Source: Blastocystis sp. Blastoise (taxonomy: Eukaryota; Protista; Bigyra: Opalinata). From it: DNA of 64,000 nt. Within the stretch, counting starts at the first letter, position 1; every line of letters starts with the position of its first letter. The stretch spans positions 1 through 64,000 of the forward strand of contig JBBPEB010000018.1 of assembly GCA_039096225.1 (NCBI GenBank). The letters are read 5' to 3'. Position numbers and translations under genes: made by a program. Positions 1-64,000 of the stretch are shown here, one piece after another. The notes beneath the pieces were generated by a model, which worked only from the letters and a program-made list of their open reading frames with translations, was not told where the DNA came from and ran no database searches.

Positions 1-1906
1 TCATATTTATATTATTTATTTATTTATATGTTTTTATTGTATATAGGTTTAATAGTCTTCTTATTCTTTCTTTCTTCTTCCTTCTTCATTTTACTTCTTC
101 CTTCTTCCTTATTCTTCTTTCTTCTTCCTACTTCTTCCTGCTTCATCATTCATCATTCTTCCTTCTTTCTTCTTTCCCATCCTTGATTCTTCCTTCTTCC
201 TTCTTCTTTATCCCTGATTCTTCCTTCTTCCTTATCCTTGATTCTTCCTACTTCCTTCTTCTTCATCCTTAATTCTTCCTTCTTCTTCTTCATACTTCCT
301 TATTCCTCATCCTTCCTACTTCTTCCTCTTCATTTCCTTCTTATTATATATATATATATATATTTAATTATTATTATTACTCTTTAAACTCCCTTTATGC
401 TCTAGAAGGAGAGAAGCAATCATTATAGATTGTTTTCAGGTTCAATTCCTGACATGAAGTCTTATTTTTCTTTTTTTAAATATTTTATTTACATATTATT
501 ATATATATATATATTCTCTTTTTTTAATTTATTTTAATCCAGTTTAATTTATACTTTTCAATTTTGACCTTATATATATATATCTAACTTTTTATAGTTT
601 TTTTAGACTTACTCTTCTCAACAACAGTCACAATGAGAACAAATCCATTTTAACTGAAACAACTAAGTCATCTCAAAACTGTTTGAATCAATCAGTATAG
701 ACGTGTATGACATAATTTATGTATTTAAACTCAATTTTAATAATTAAAAGTAAACAAACCAAACACACATGTTGACTTTAAAACTTTAAACTCAGTGTTA
801 AATGGTTAGTTATAAAGAGTAGACACAAAACATTGATTTATACTAAAAGGAATGAAAACAATCAACTCTTGATACAACTTTACCATTTGACAAAACACTC
901 ATCCACAATATTTTTCAAAGTTCTTTTAGTGAAGTGTTTATATAGACATATAATGTATAAAATGAAAGTCAACTCTTTGAATCTCTTATTTTAGGACAGT
1001 CTTTAAAACATTTTGACAAATAGAGAACATTTAACTTGTTATTTAAAGCTAATATTTTAAGAGTAGACTTGACTTGAATGAATAAAAACAACAGCTAACA
1101 CTTTAAACATTTTAAGACATACTTTACATTTTGCCGATACACTTTGACCTTCATAATTTTGACTCTCCTTTTAATATAGTATGGAGTATTATCTCTAGTT
1201 TATTAAATAAAAGTCATTATATTGAATCTCTCACTCTAAGACCACTTAATTCACATTTTTCAAAATTGTCACTTTTAAACTCGTTATTTTAAGACTTTGT
1301 TTCTACTATAGTAGTTTGAGGACCTATTGATTACTATGATACAATATTAGTCAATTATAAGAAGATCGAAGAAAATATCGATCACTCAAAAATCGTCCTC
1401 AGGAGCTCAAAATCGCTACACCTAGGTTTTTTGACCTCCTGAATCAGAATATCATGTCAAATTGACAATCTAAATTTGACCGTTAAGGCCTCACGTGTTC
1501 AATATGAAAAAGTCTTTAAAAATAGATAAATATAAAGAATAAACACGGATAACGTATATTGTGGGATTGAGAAAAAATCAAGTTTACCCCATGTTTATTT
1601 TCCAATTGTCTGGTCAACAATTTTTATCGGGGTCATCCCAAAGAGCCAATCAAAAACGACTCAAAAATCATATTTTCTGTTCTTTTATTAATAACTGTTT
1701 AATTATAAATAATATCGCTTAACCAAATATATGTTGCAAAACTACACGTTATATCCTATTGAACTGTGTTTTAACCAAATCTTAACTCCCCGTAAGTTTA
1801 GAGGAGTTGAGGCTACAAACTCTAGTATATAGTAGCCAATCAAATGCATTTTCCAAAAACTGACCAATGGGAATTTTTTTGCCTATTCTCATATATATAG
1901 TAATGA
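1..1906 (-). mobile_element. Helitron family A copy (5' end at 1906, runs off the window start); internally shorter than the 4454 copy
   Basis: Minus strand begins A|TCATTACTATATATATGAGAATAGGC, the same 5' end as the copies at 4454, 4813, 57939 and 61710. It interrupts the 4454 copy inside its AATAAAT repeat. Confidence 0.85.
393..460 (+). ncRNA. tRNA-like cloverleaf, mascRNA-type geometry (version A1)
   Basis: CTTTATG / CTCT-AGAAGG-AGAG / AAGCAATC-ATTATA-GATTGTTT / TCAGG-TTCAATT-CCTGA / CATGAAG-T. Four contiguous stems, GG in the D-loop, canonical T-loop/B box. Confidence 0.65.
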
Positions 1907-61709: not shown

Positions 61710-64000
61710 TCATTACTATATATATGAGAATAGGCAAAAAAATTCCCATTGGTCAGTTTTTGGAAAATGCATTTGATTGGTTAAGGTATACTATAGTTTG
61801 TACCCACAACTCCTCTAAACTTACGGGGAGTTAACTTTTGGTTGAAACACAGTTCAATAGGATATAACATGTAGTTGTGCACCGTATATTTGGTTAAGCG
61901 ATATTGTTTATAATTAAAAAGATATTAATAAAAGAACAGAAAACATGATTTTTGAGTCGTTTTTGATTGGCTCTTTGGGGTGACCCCGATAAAAATTGTT
62001 GACCAGACAATTGGAAAATAAACATGGGGTAAACTTGATTTTTTATCAATCCCACAATATACGTTATCCGTGTTTATTCTTTATATTTATCTATTTTTTA
62101 ATACTTTTTCATATTGAACACGTGAGGCCTTAACGGTCAAATTTAGATTCTTAATTTGACATCATATTCTGATTCAGGAGGTCAAAAAACCTAGGTGTAC
62201 CAATTTTCAGCTCCTGAGGACGATTTTTGAGTGATCGATATTTTCTTTGATCTTCTTATAATCGACTAATATTACAGTATTGTAATTGATAGGTCCTCAA
62301 ACTACTATAGTTAAAACAAAGTCTTAAAATAATGAGTTTGAGTGTCACAATTCTGAAAAATGTGAATTAAGTGGTCTTAGAGGATAAGATTCAATATAAT
62401 GACTTTTATTTAGTAAACTAGAGATAATACTCTATACTATATTAAAAGAAGAGTCAAAACTATGAAAGTCAAAGTGTATGACCAAATGACAAAATGTGTC
62501 TTAAAAAGTAAAAGGGTGTCTATATGTGTTTCAAATGTTAAGTCAAGTCAATTCTATGAATAAGAGCTTTAAATAAATAGTTTAAGGTTGTCAAATTCAA
62601 AAGAATGTGTAAAACATAGTCTTAAACTATGAATAAAAAATTTAGAGATATTAATCAGTGTACAGCTGTAGTAGCTCTACAACATATCAAAAGTACAAAG
62701 AAAATAATTTTTAGAGAGTGGATGTGTGAAGGGTTGTGACTATTATTTAAAATTTATTTTTACTTCAGTTTGAGCAAAATCGTGAATTTCGTGCACTGTA
62801 GAAAAATTGAGTCAAAAAATCAACTCTAAGGGTCTTAATTTTGAAAAATGTAAAAATGAGTGACTTAGAGGACGAGATTCAATATTTGAGTGTTTAGTCA
62901 TTAAACTAGACTGTATGATCTATATTATATTAAAAGAAGGGACAAAACTATTTTGATCAAAGTGTATGACCAAATGGTAAAGTGTCTTTAAAAGTGTTAT
63001 GGTGATGCCAGTTGTGTTTAAGGGTCTAAATCAAGTTTACTCTTAAAATATCAACTTTAAATAACCAGTTAAAGGTTGTCAATTTGTCAAAATGTTTTAA
63101 AGCGTGTCTTAAACAAAGAGATTCAAGAAGTTGACTTTCATTTTATACATAACATGTATATATAAACACTTTACTAAAAGAACTTTGGAAAATATTGTGG
63201 ATGAGTGTTTTGTCAAATGGCAAAGTTGTATCAAGAGTTGATTGTTTCCATTCATTTTTGTTTAAATCAATGTTTTATGTCTACTCTATAAAAATAACCT
63301 TTTAATACTGAGTTTAACGTTTAAAAGTCAACATGTGTGTTTGGTTTGTTTACTTTTGAGAGTTGAAAATCAGTTTAAAATGATAAATTATGACATACAC
63401 GTCTATATTGATTGATTCAAACAGTTTTGAGATGACTTAGTTGCTCGAGTTAAAATGGATTTTGTTCTCATTCTGACTGTTGTTGAGAAGAGGAAGTCTA
63501 AAAAAAACTATAAAAAGTTAGATATATGTATGCAATGTCAAAATTGAAAAGTATAAAGTAAAATGGATTAAAATGAATTTAAAAAAGAGAATATATATAT
63601 ATATATATAATATGTAAAAAATATTAAAGAAAAAGAAAAATAAGACTTCATGTCAGGAATTGAACCTGAAAACAATCTATAATGATTGTTTCTCTCCTTC
63701 TAGAGCATAAAGGGAGTTTATAAATAATAATAATAATTAAATATATATATATATATATATATATATATAATAGGAATGAAGGAAGTAGGAAGAAAGAAGT
63801 AGGAAGTAGGAAGAAAGAAGTAGGAAGTAGGAAGAAAGAAGAAAGAATGAAGAATGAGGAAGAATGAAGTAGGAAGGATGAGGAAGGATGAGGAAGAAGG
63901 AAGAATGAGGAAGGATGTAAAAGTAGGAATGATGAGGAAGAAGGAAGAATGAGGAAGAAGAAGGAAAAAACAAGGATGAAGGATGAGGAAGAAGGAAGAA
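61710..64000 (+). mobile_element. Helitron family A / Hel1-type copy running off the window end
   Basis: A|TCATTAC 5' end; colinear with 4813-7100 but visibly diverged. Confidence 0.88.
63645..63712 (-). ncRNA. tRNA-like cloverleaf (version A1 variant)
   Basis: As 393-460, but the G.U pair in the middle arm is A-U (AAACAATC/GATTGTTT). Confidence 0.65.

Follow-up and report, generated by a model that had tools for sequence, protein, structure and literature searches.

A four-arm cloverleaf that occurs eight times in a 64,000-nt stretch of the genome of Blastocystis sp. Blastoise (contig JBBPEB010000018.1, positions 1 to 64,000; hereafter the window) is, on sequence evidence, a transfer RNA (tRNA) mimic that cannot decode. 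It is real and under selection, and it is carried by DNA transposons of four superfamilies, Helitron, CACTA, hAT and Mutator-like. Its structure, the selection acting on it, its strand, its carriers and the layout of the loci are established from the sequence. As to its function, we infer, with a probability of about 0.5, that the cloverleaf is cut by RNase P and tRNase Z (RNase P/Z) and thereby ends transposon transcripts made by RNA polymerase II (Pol II).

All eight copies listed in a preliminary description of the window were located on the strands given there, and each of them folds into a four-arm cloverleaf (Table 1). In the window, whose GC content is 23.7%, the 11-mer of the T arm is present eight times against 1.24 expected, a count reached by none of 100 shuffles. 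Folding z-scores range from -2.8 to -3.9 for the versions called A1, A2 and C, with a value of -1.5 for D, whose acceptor has 5 bp. The four versions distinguished initially do covary, but A1 itself comprises three variants among its four copies, owing to an A/G change in the D loop and to the copy at 63645, where a G-U pair of the middle arm is replaced by A-U. No cloverleaf was found between positions 41117 and 60372 of the window.

Structure and selection of the cloverleaf family

The Blastoise assembly (33.34 Mb, 34 contigs) contains 270 exact matches to the 15-nt T arm, against no control matches, and 32 further matches to a T-loop variant of this motif, i.e. ~300 in all, some of which may be ordinary tRNAs. 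In a covariance-model search of the kind proposed as a check, the 150 best matches all score between 80 and 92 bits. Among the ~50 loci that we read (L031, L037, L039, L040 and L044-L049 designate stretches elsewhere in the same genome), there are at least 20 sequence versions rather than four.

In an alignment of 17 versions, 95.8% of the stem cells are paired, and 14 of the 24 pairs show two-sided changes. None of 500 shuffles reached as high a value, and slid structures pair at 37-44%. As such counts are inflated by relatedness, changes within families were examined too: of 13 stem changes, 10 preserve pairing, where 17-39% would be expected to do so (p 4e-6 to 6e-3). These data bear out the structural selection suggested earlier. 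On the cloverleaf strand, G-U outnumbers A-C by 13 to 3, and this excess fixes the strand.

Comparisons with the flanks point the same way. In five within-family pairs, the cloverleaves are 0.91-0.97 identical versus 0.71-0.79 for the downstream flanks; the A2 versus A2b pair has no excess of cloverleaf conservation. Between families, cloverleaf identity is 0.70-0.78, with downstream flanks at the 0.53 baseline. In these comparisons, the cloverleaf is the only sequence that different element families have in common.

The GG of the D loop, four pairs of the T stem and most T-loop residues are invariant, i.e. the elbow recognized initially. Invariance extends further, to acceptor pair 5 (A-U), to the C-G pair that opens the D stem and to the uppermost two pairs of the middle arm. 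The middle loop is variable, with 5-7 nt and no fixed anticodon in the 17 versions. Most versions have no variable loop, as first reported, but in C, E2, G and H the middle arm has 1-2 unpaired bases at its foot. We rejected a canonical tRNA identity (RF00005), because its features, namely the 8-9 linker, a variable loop and a 7-nt anticodon loop with U33 and a purine at position 37, are not found. In the window, ARAGORN predicts no tRNA and Rfam detects no relevant family, in agreement with a non-decoding element. A tRNA finder was expected to miss the cloverleaf; this holds for the window, but ARAGORN accepts version E2 as a tRNA-Val(aac) with atypical loop bases.

The preliminary description had likened the element to vertebrate mascRNA and menRNA (RF01684), and this geometry was confirmed. 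Similar features are the linker-less cloverleaf with a 7-bp acceptor directly on the D stem, the small D loop with GG close to its 3' end, the tRNA-type T arm and the location at the end of a long non-coding unit, which in our case is predicted. The cloverleaves of mascRNA and menRNA are known to lack the tRNA linker residues, and the D-loop GG and T-loop elbow form the best-matching region among mascRNA, menRNA and tRNA (PMC11693755). In contrast with them, the Blastocystis element has 67-69 rather than ~58 nt, AU-rich stems, spliced upstream units and no MALAT1-type triple helix upstream, and ~300 copies of it are found in stramenopile DNA transposons rather than in two host genes. MALAT1 and NEAT1, with their vertebrate relatives, are the only long non-coding RNAs (lncRNAs) known to be matured by tRNA enzymes (PMC12941219). 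RF01684 has no match in the window at E-values up to 10, and its best genome-wide score, 26.9 bits against a family cut-off of 42.5 bits, is at a real tRNA. The cloverleaf thus resembles mascRNA in geometry, as judged from its sequence, without being a member of its family. It probably works like mascRNA.

Carrier transposons and predicted upstream units

Carriage by DNA transposons is supported by termini and target duplications, and it extends well beyond the elements first described. Versions A1 and A2 are found in Helitrons, identified by their TC start, 3' hairpin, CTAG end and A|T insertion site, and they are antisense to the 5'-3' direction of the element. A1 lies 1.93 kb from the 5' end and A2 170-590 nt inside the 3' end. 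The Helitron at 61710-68112 harbours a second cloverleaf (A2), 4.2 kb upstream of the A1 copy at 63645..63712 and on the same strand. Version C is carried by an 8.5-kb CACTA element with inverted ends and a 3-bp target duplication (L040), and version G by a 5.95-kb hAT element with an 8-bp target duplication and a hAT-type transposase, the end of whose gene it faces (L037). H is carried by an element of 4.6 kb whose inverted ends span 231 bp and whose target duplication has 9 bp (L039); this element has no transposase and is therefore Mutator-like by its termini only. Apart from the cassette, there is little in the non-autonomous elements of L040 (CACTA) and L039 (Mutator-like). Version D belongs to a segment present in three copies and has a Transposase_21-like gene downstream. 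Tandems of E and E2 occur at 12 places with a spacing of 3.3-4.5 kb, and F is located after a spliced gene.

Upstream of A1, C, E, E2 and H, the sequences on the cloverleaf strand have a common predicted layout, in which short GT-AG exons are followed by a last, G-poor stretch that ends at the cloverleaf. This stretch is 0.4-4 kb long and is C/U-rich or composed of UUA/UA repeats. The A1 unit in the window is C/U-rich and contains almost no G. The relaxed Blastocystis-type poly(A) motif (TGTTTGT) is absent from 16 kb of last exons and from the 200 nt that follow seven cloverleaf copies; it follows five of nine putative gene ends. Versions A2, D, F and G fit this layout poorly. No clear motif common to the upstream exons of different families was detected beyond AT-rich intron-like matches. 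We also considered a conserved protein encoded in the spliced antisense A1 unit and rejected it, as the reading frames differ between copies.

In the window, a Helitron cluster (4813-23000) is inserted into the C-bearing CACTA, 59 nt upstream of C, and an intact CACTA copy joins 4812 to 23001. The possibility that C is part of the adjacent Helitron was rejected, since it starts 59 nt past the Helitron 3' end, inside the CACTA. The CACTA pentamer at 41044 is unsupported as an element end, because the similarity among copies continues upstream of it for at least 1.3 kb. The Transposase_21-like gene downstream of D contains a TAA microsatellite into which a 3-kb element has inserted, interrupting the gene. 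The RepHel protein of the window has 100% identity to a protein of Blastocystis sp. Blastoise, and the same holds for the two transposases that were compared. The near relative of RepHel and all relatives of the CACTA-type transposase belong to this same genome.

Table 1. Cloverleaf copies and associated features in the window.
Feature	Position	Strand	Context
Cloverleaf A1	393..460	+	Antisense within Helitron with 5' end at 1906(-); 87.5 bits, copy in model training set
Cloverleaf A1	2453..2520	+	Antisense in Helitron with 5' end at 4454(-); upstream unit interrupted by another Helitron at 1906
Cloverleaf A1	6747..6814	-	RepHel-bearing Helitron cluster, 1.93 kb in from 5' end (4813); antisense to RepHel
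Cloverleaf A2	15774..15842	-	Non-autonomous Helitron 13341-16428, 586 nt in from 3' end; preceded by G-free heptamer tract
Cloverleaf C	23060..23128	+	Inside CACTA; intact 8.5-kb relatives in L040, L044-L049
Cloverleaf D (short version)	41062..41117	+	~1.45 kb upstream of CACTA-type transposase gene; segment present three times in genome
Cloverleaf A2	60373..60441	-	Non-autonomous Helitron 57939-60697, 256 nt in from 3' end
Cloverleaf A1	63645..63712	-	6.4-kb Helitron, 61710 to contig position 68112
Predicted spliced non-coding unit ending at A1	6815..7899	-	Exons 7899-7816, 7670-7588, 7225-6815
Last piece of CACTA pyrimidine tract	4455..4812	+	Parted from C by Helitron insertion at A|T site
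Helitron RepHel gene	18085..22764	+	Helitron 3' hairpin and CTAG end at 23000
Right part of CACTA	23001..26227	+	Cloverleaf C, second spliced unit, subterminal repeats, terminal inverted repeat
Transposase_21-like (CACTA) gene	42575..48915	+	Downstream of D; start approximate

Candidate functions of the cloverleaf

RNase P and tRNase Z recognize the 12-bp acceptor-T stack and the elbow of their substrates. Protein-only RNase P (PRORP), which contacts the tRNA elbow, is the form reported for stramenopiles (PMC10941002). The conservation of this stack and elbow, together with the mascRNA/menRNA geometry, suggests that the cloverleaf is cleaved out of longer Pol II transcripts. In the folded RNA, the stacked acceptor and T arm (7+5 bp) and the elbow formed by the D and T loops would imitate those of a pre-tRNA, i.e. 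the parts that both enzymes measure. This RNA would be read within longer Pol II transposon transcripts which, for A1, C, E, E2 and H, would run from a promoter through the short spliced exons to the long G-poor last exon. A cut by RNase P at the 5' foot of the cloverleaf would then generate a non-polyadenylated 3' end on the upstream RNA, and tRNase Z would release an RNA of 67-69 nt. Inward-facing copies (A2, G) may direct the same cutting of transcripts that run antisense into the element. The module would have moved among Helitron, CACTA, Mutator-like and hAT elements by capture, with selection maintained in each.

This cleavage model is supported by the splice signals and G-poor tracts on the cloverleaf strand, which stop at the cloverleaf. 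An RNase P signal was one of two functions envisaged in the preliminary description, and it gains from the spliced, G-poor upstream units devoid of poly(A) motifs; transcription, cleavage and a benefit to the element are what we infer. A tRNase Z gene is present in the genome. A tRNA-like structure also serves as a processing signal in plant mitochondrial tRNA-like elements and nuclear tRNA-snoRNA precursors, which are cut by PRORP. Those substrates differ in being organellar mRNAs or containing real tRNAs, with no linker-less four-arm elements in transposons.

Several observations nevertheless weigh against cleavage of Pol II transcripts. In 15 of 16 versions there is no A-rich tract in the last 30 nt before the stem, only D having an A6 run, and without a MALAT1-type A-rich tract the freshly cut 3' end would have no known protection. 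The absence of poly(A) motifs is in part due to the low G content of the tracts. A2 resides in short Helitrons with neither promoter nor exons inside the element, and D, F and G have no G-poor tract. Genome searches found no RNase P component, although the intron-rich genome weakens such searches. In addition, word sharing with 23001-26230 is only partial, two runs containing 0.25 and 0.09 of its words; one of these is probably an RNA run, and the other is a poly(A) gut run. A second spliced unit, at ~25030-25640 (+) in the CACTA, 1.9 kb downstream of C, may explain the words in common with RNA runs. Lastly, a perfect B-box consensus is present in 17 of 17 versions, and four Ts (T4) are found within 20 nt downstream in 9 of 16 versions, where chance would give 25%.

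These last two features would be expected if the cloverleaf were a stand-alone RNA polymerase III (Pol III) gene, a possible but less probable explanation. The T-arm B-box would recruit TFIIIC, and a short transcript would be trimmed by RNase P/Z, providing the element with a ~68-nt decoy or regulator RNA or with a TFIIIC boundary; the upstream units would be mere neighbours. The versions devoid of a G-poor tract would fit, as would the retention of A2 in short deletion derivatives with just 170-590 nt of element upstream, and the AT-rich spacer of 1.1-1.5 kb that separates A2, E, F, G and D from the next unit, gene or element end. However, a strict A-box is found in none of the 17 versions and a loose one in five. 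The T5 run first noted after A1 is real but not general, and no T4 is found within 50 nt of A2, C, D or H. Such a gene also leaves unexplained the same-strand spliced, G-poor tracts that end at the cloverleaf in Helitron, CACTA, Mutator-like and E-type loci. Moreover, the T arm of mascRNA is B-box-like too, yet mascRNA derives from Pol II transcripts. Thus, the Pol III/TFIIIC function envisaged initially retains its B-box but comes out weaker. Both this explanation and RNase P/Z cleavage require a folded RNA, which is very probable.

It is unlikely that the cloverleaf belongs to a host family of lncRNA or small-RNA genes captured as cargo, in the manner of Pack-MULEs and Helitrons, with selection on a host function and amplification by the elements. 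The L040 and L039 elements with little but the cassette would agree with this idea, as would the lack of an assigned carrier for the E/E2 tandem (12 pairs) and for F. Against it, a transposon is present at every locus with a resolvable context, pair-keeping changes postdate the split of the families, and the upstream exons of different families have no clear homology. A signal acting at the DNA level only, either as a TFIIIC site or as a single-stranded DNA fold used in transposition, is quite improbable. Helitrons do move via single-stranded DNA and the B-box is perfect, but a double-stranded site can do without stems, CACTA, hAT and Mutator elements do not pass through a long single-stranded stage, and elbow contacts are a feature of RNA.

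We consider it still less credible that the copies are decayed tRNA genes or heads of short interspersed nuclear elements (SINEs). The D arm retains tRNA-like bases, so that tRNA ancestry is likely, ARAGORN accepts E2, and a few single copies have broken pairs, including an A2 copy (L031:7871-7944, minus strand) with broken outer acceptor pairs that is probably decaying. Nevertheless, compensatory changes affect all four stems, and the 5-7-nt middle loop has no fixed anticodon; none of the best 63 tRNA matches in the genome falls at the listed motif positions. A tRNA-derived SINE was rejected because there is no strict A-box, body, tail or common flank, between-family flanks being at baseline identity. 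Decay is thus largely ruled out by the pairing, flank and within-family comparisons.

Neighbouring features, relatives and significance

Other features of the window were noted. A micro-exon gene (8256-9440, plus strand) lies in a Helitron, divergent from the A1 unit; it has a basic, Arg-rich first exon followed by short, Gly/Ser/Asp-rich exons with lengths in multiples of three. Its copy in L031 (~5330-5720) is missing several introns of the other copies. A 3-kb element family (36756-39734, 43454-46436, and 10554-13342 with 16429-16739) has a GC-rich hairpin end and no CTAG terminus. Its copies adjoin TAA or other AT-rich repeats, and two of them form a near-perfect inverted pair. A second, divergent RepHel Helitron (49022-54083, minus strand) has its 3' end inserted where the CACTA transposase gene ends, in a TTA microsatellite. 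Two Helitrons have inserted into an array at 56950-61665, whose units of ~27 nt have splice-like signals and TA microsatellites on their flanks. Elsewhere in the genome, contigs C9 and C12 are dense in tRNA genes in mirrored order and are perhaps two assemblies of the organelle genome.

No relative of the cloverleaf was found outside this genome in viral and metagenome contigs or at the loci of two distant hAT relatives, other tortoise strains not being covered. Pattern scans of the viral and metagenome contigs returned ordinary tRNAs or chance matches, with a best score of 38 bits. Four phage-like metagenome contigs (L060:140-189(-), L079:1429-1482(-), L084:5992-6045(-) and L091:1393-1446(+)) carry a 50-nt linker-less, three-arm tRNA-like element with an 8-bp acceptor, a D arm with GG and a T arm, but no anticodon arm. 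It is located shortly after an ssb-like gene in three of the contigs, has a fold z-score of -2.6 and no Rfam match, and shows no connection with the Blastocystis family in the tests made.

Literature searches returned no report of a tRNA-like element in Blastocystis or in DNA transposons of these kinds. The passages on tRNAs, repeats and transposons in the tortoise Blastocystis genome paper name no such element (PMC12129017). The RNA-seq published there used poly(A) selection, and would therefore reveal splice junctions but not 3' ends formed at the cloverleaf. Several known systems are comparable in part. Heads of tRNA-derived SINEs and the TMERs of gammaherpesviruses are B-box-bearing tRNA-like units that are multicopy or reside on a mobile genome. 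In contrast with them, the Blastocystis element has no A-box, SINE body or tail, its stems are under selection, and it has spread inside DNA transposons. The ENE triple helices of plant and fungal transposon RNAs and the ribozymes of Penelope and R2 elements are structured modules kept for the handling of RNA ends. These have other folds, occur mostly in retroelements, and are self-acting rather than substrates of host tRNA enzymes.

More tentatively, the cloverleaf may be part of an accessory RNA system common to these transposons. A linker-less tRNA mimic with an origin apart from mascRNA would be exchanged among the four superfamilies and let the elements use host RNase P/Z, either to make a small RNA together with lncRNAs that lack poly(A) tails or to destroy antisense transcripts that read through, to the benefit of the elements' own spread. 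If this is true, the linker-less geometry would have arisen a second time, independently, in a stramenopile, and would hence be a convergent solution, and the 20 or more natural variants would mark what RNase P/Z require of a substrate. A selected, structured RNA module common to Helitron, CACTA, hAT and Mutator-like elements would be new for DNA transposons, and its sharing points to an unknown RNA layer in their control.

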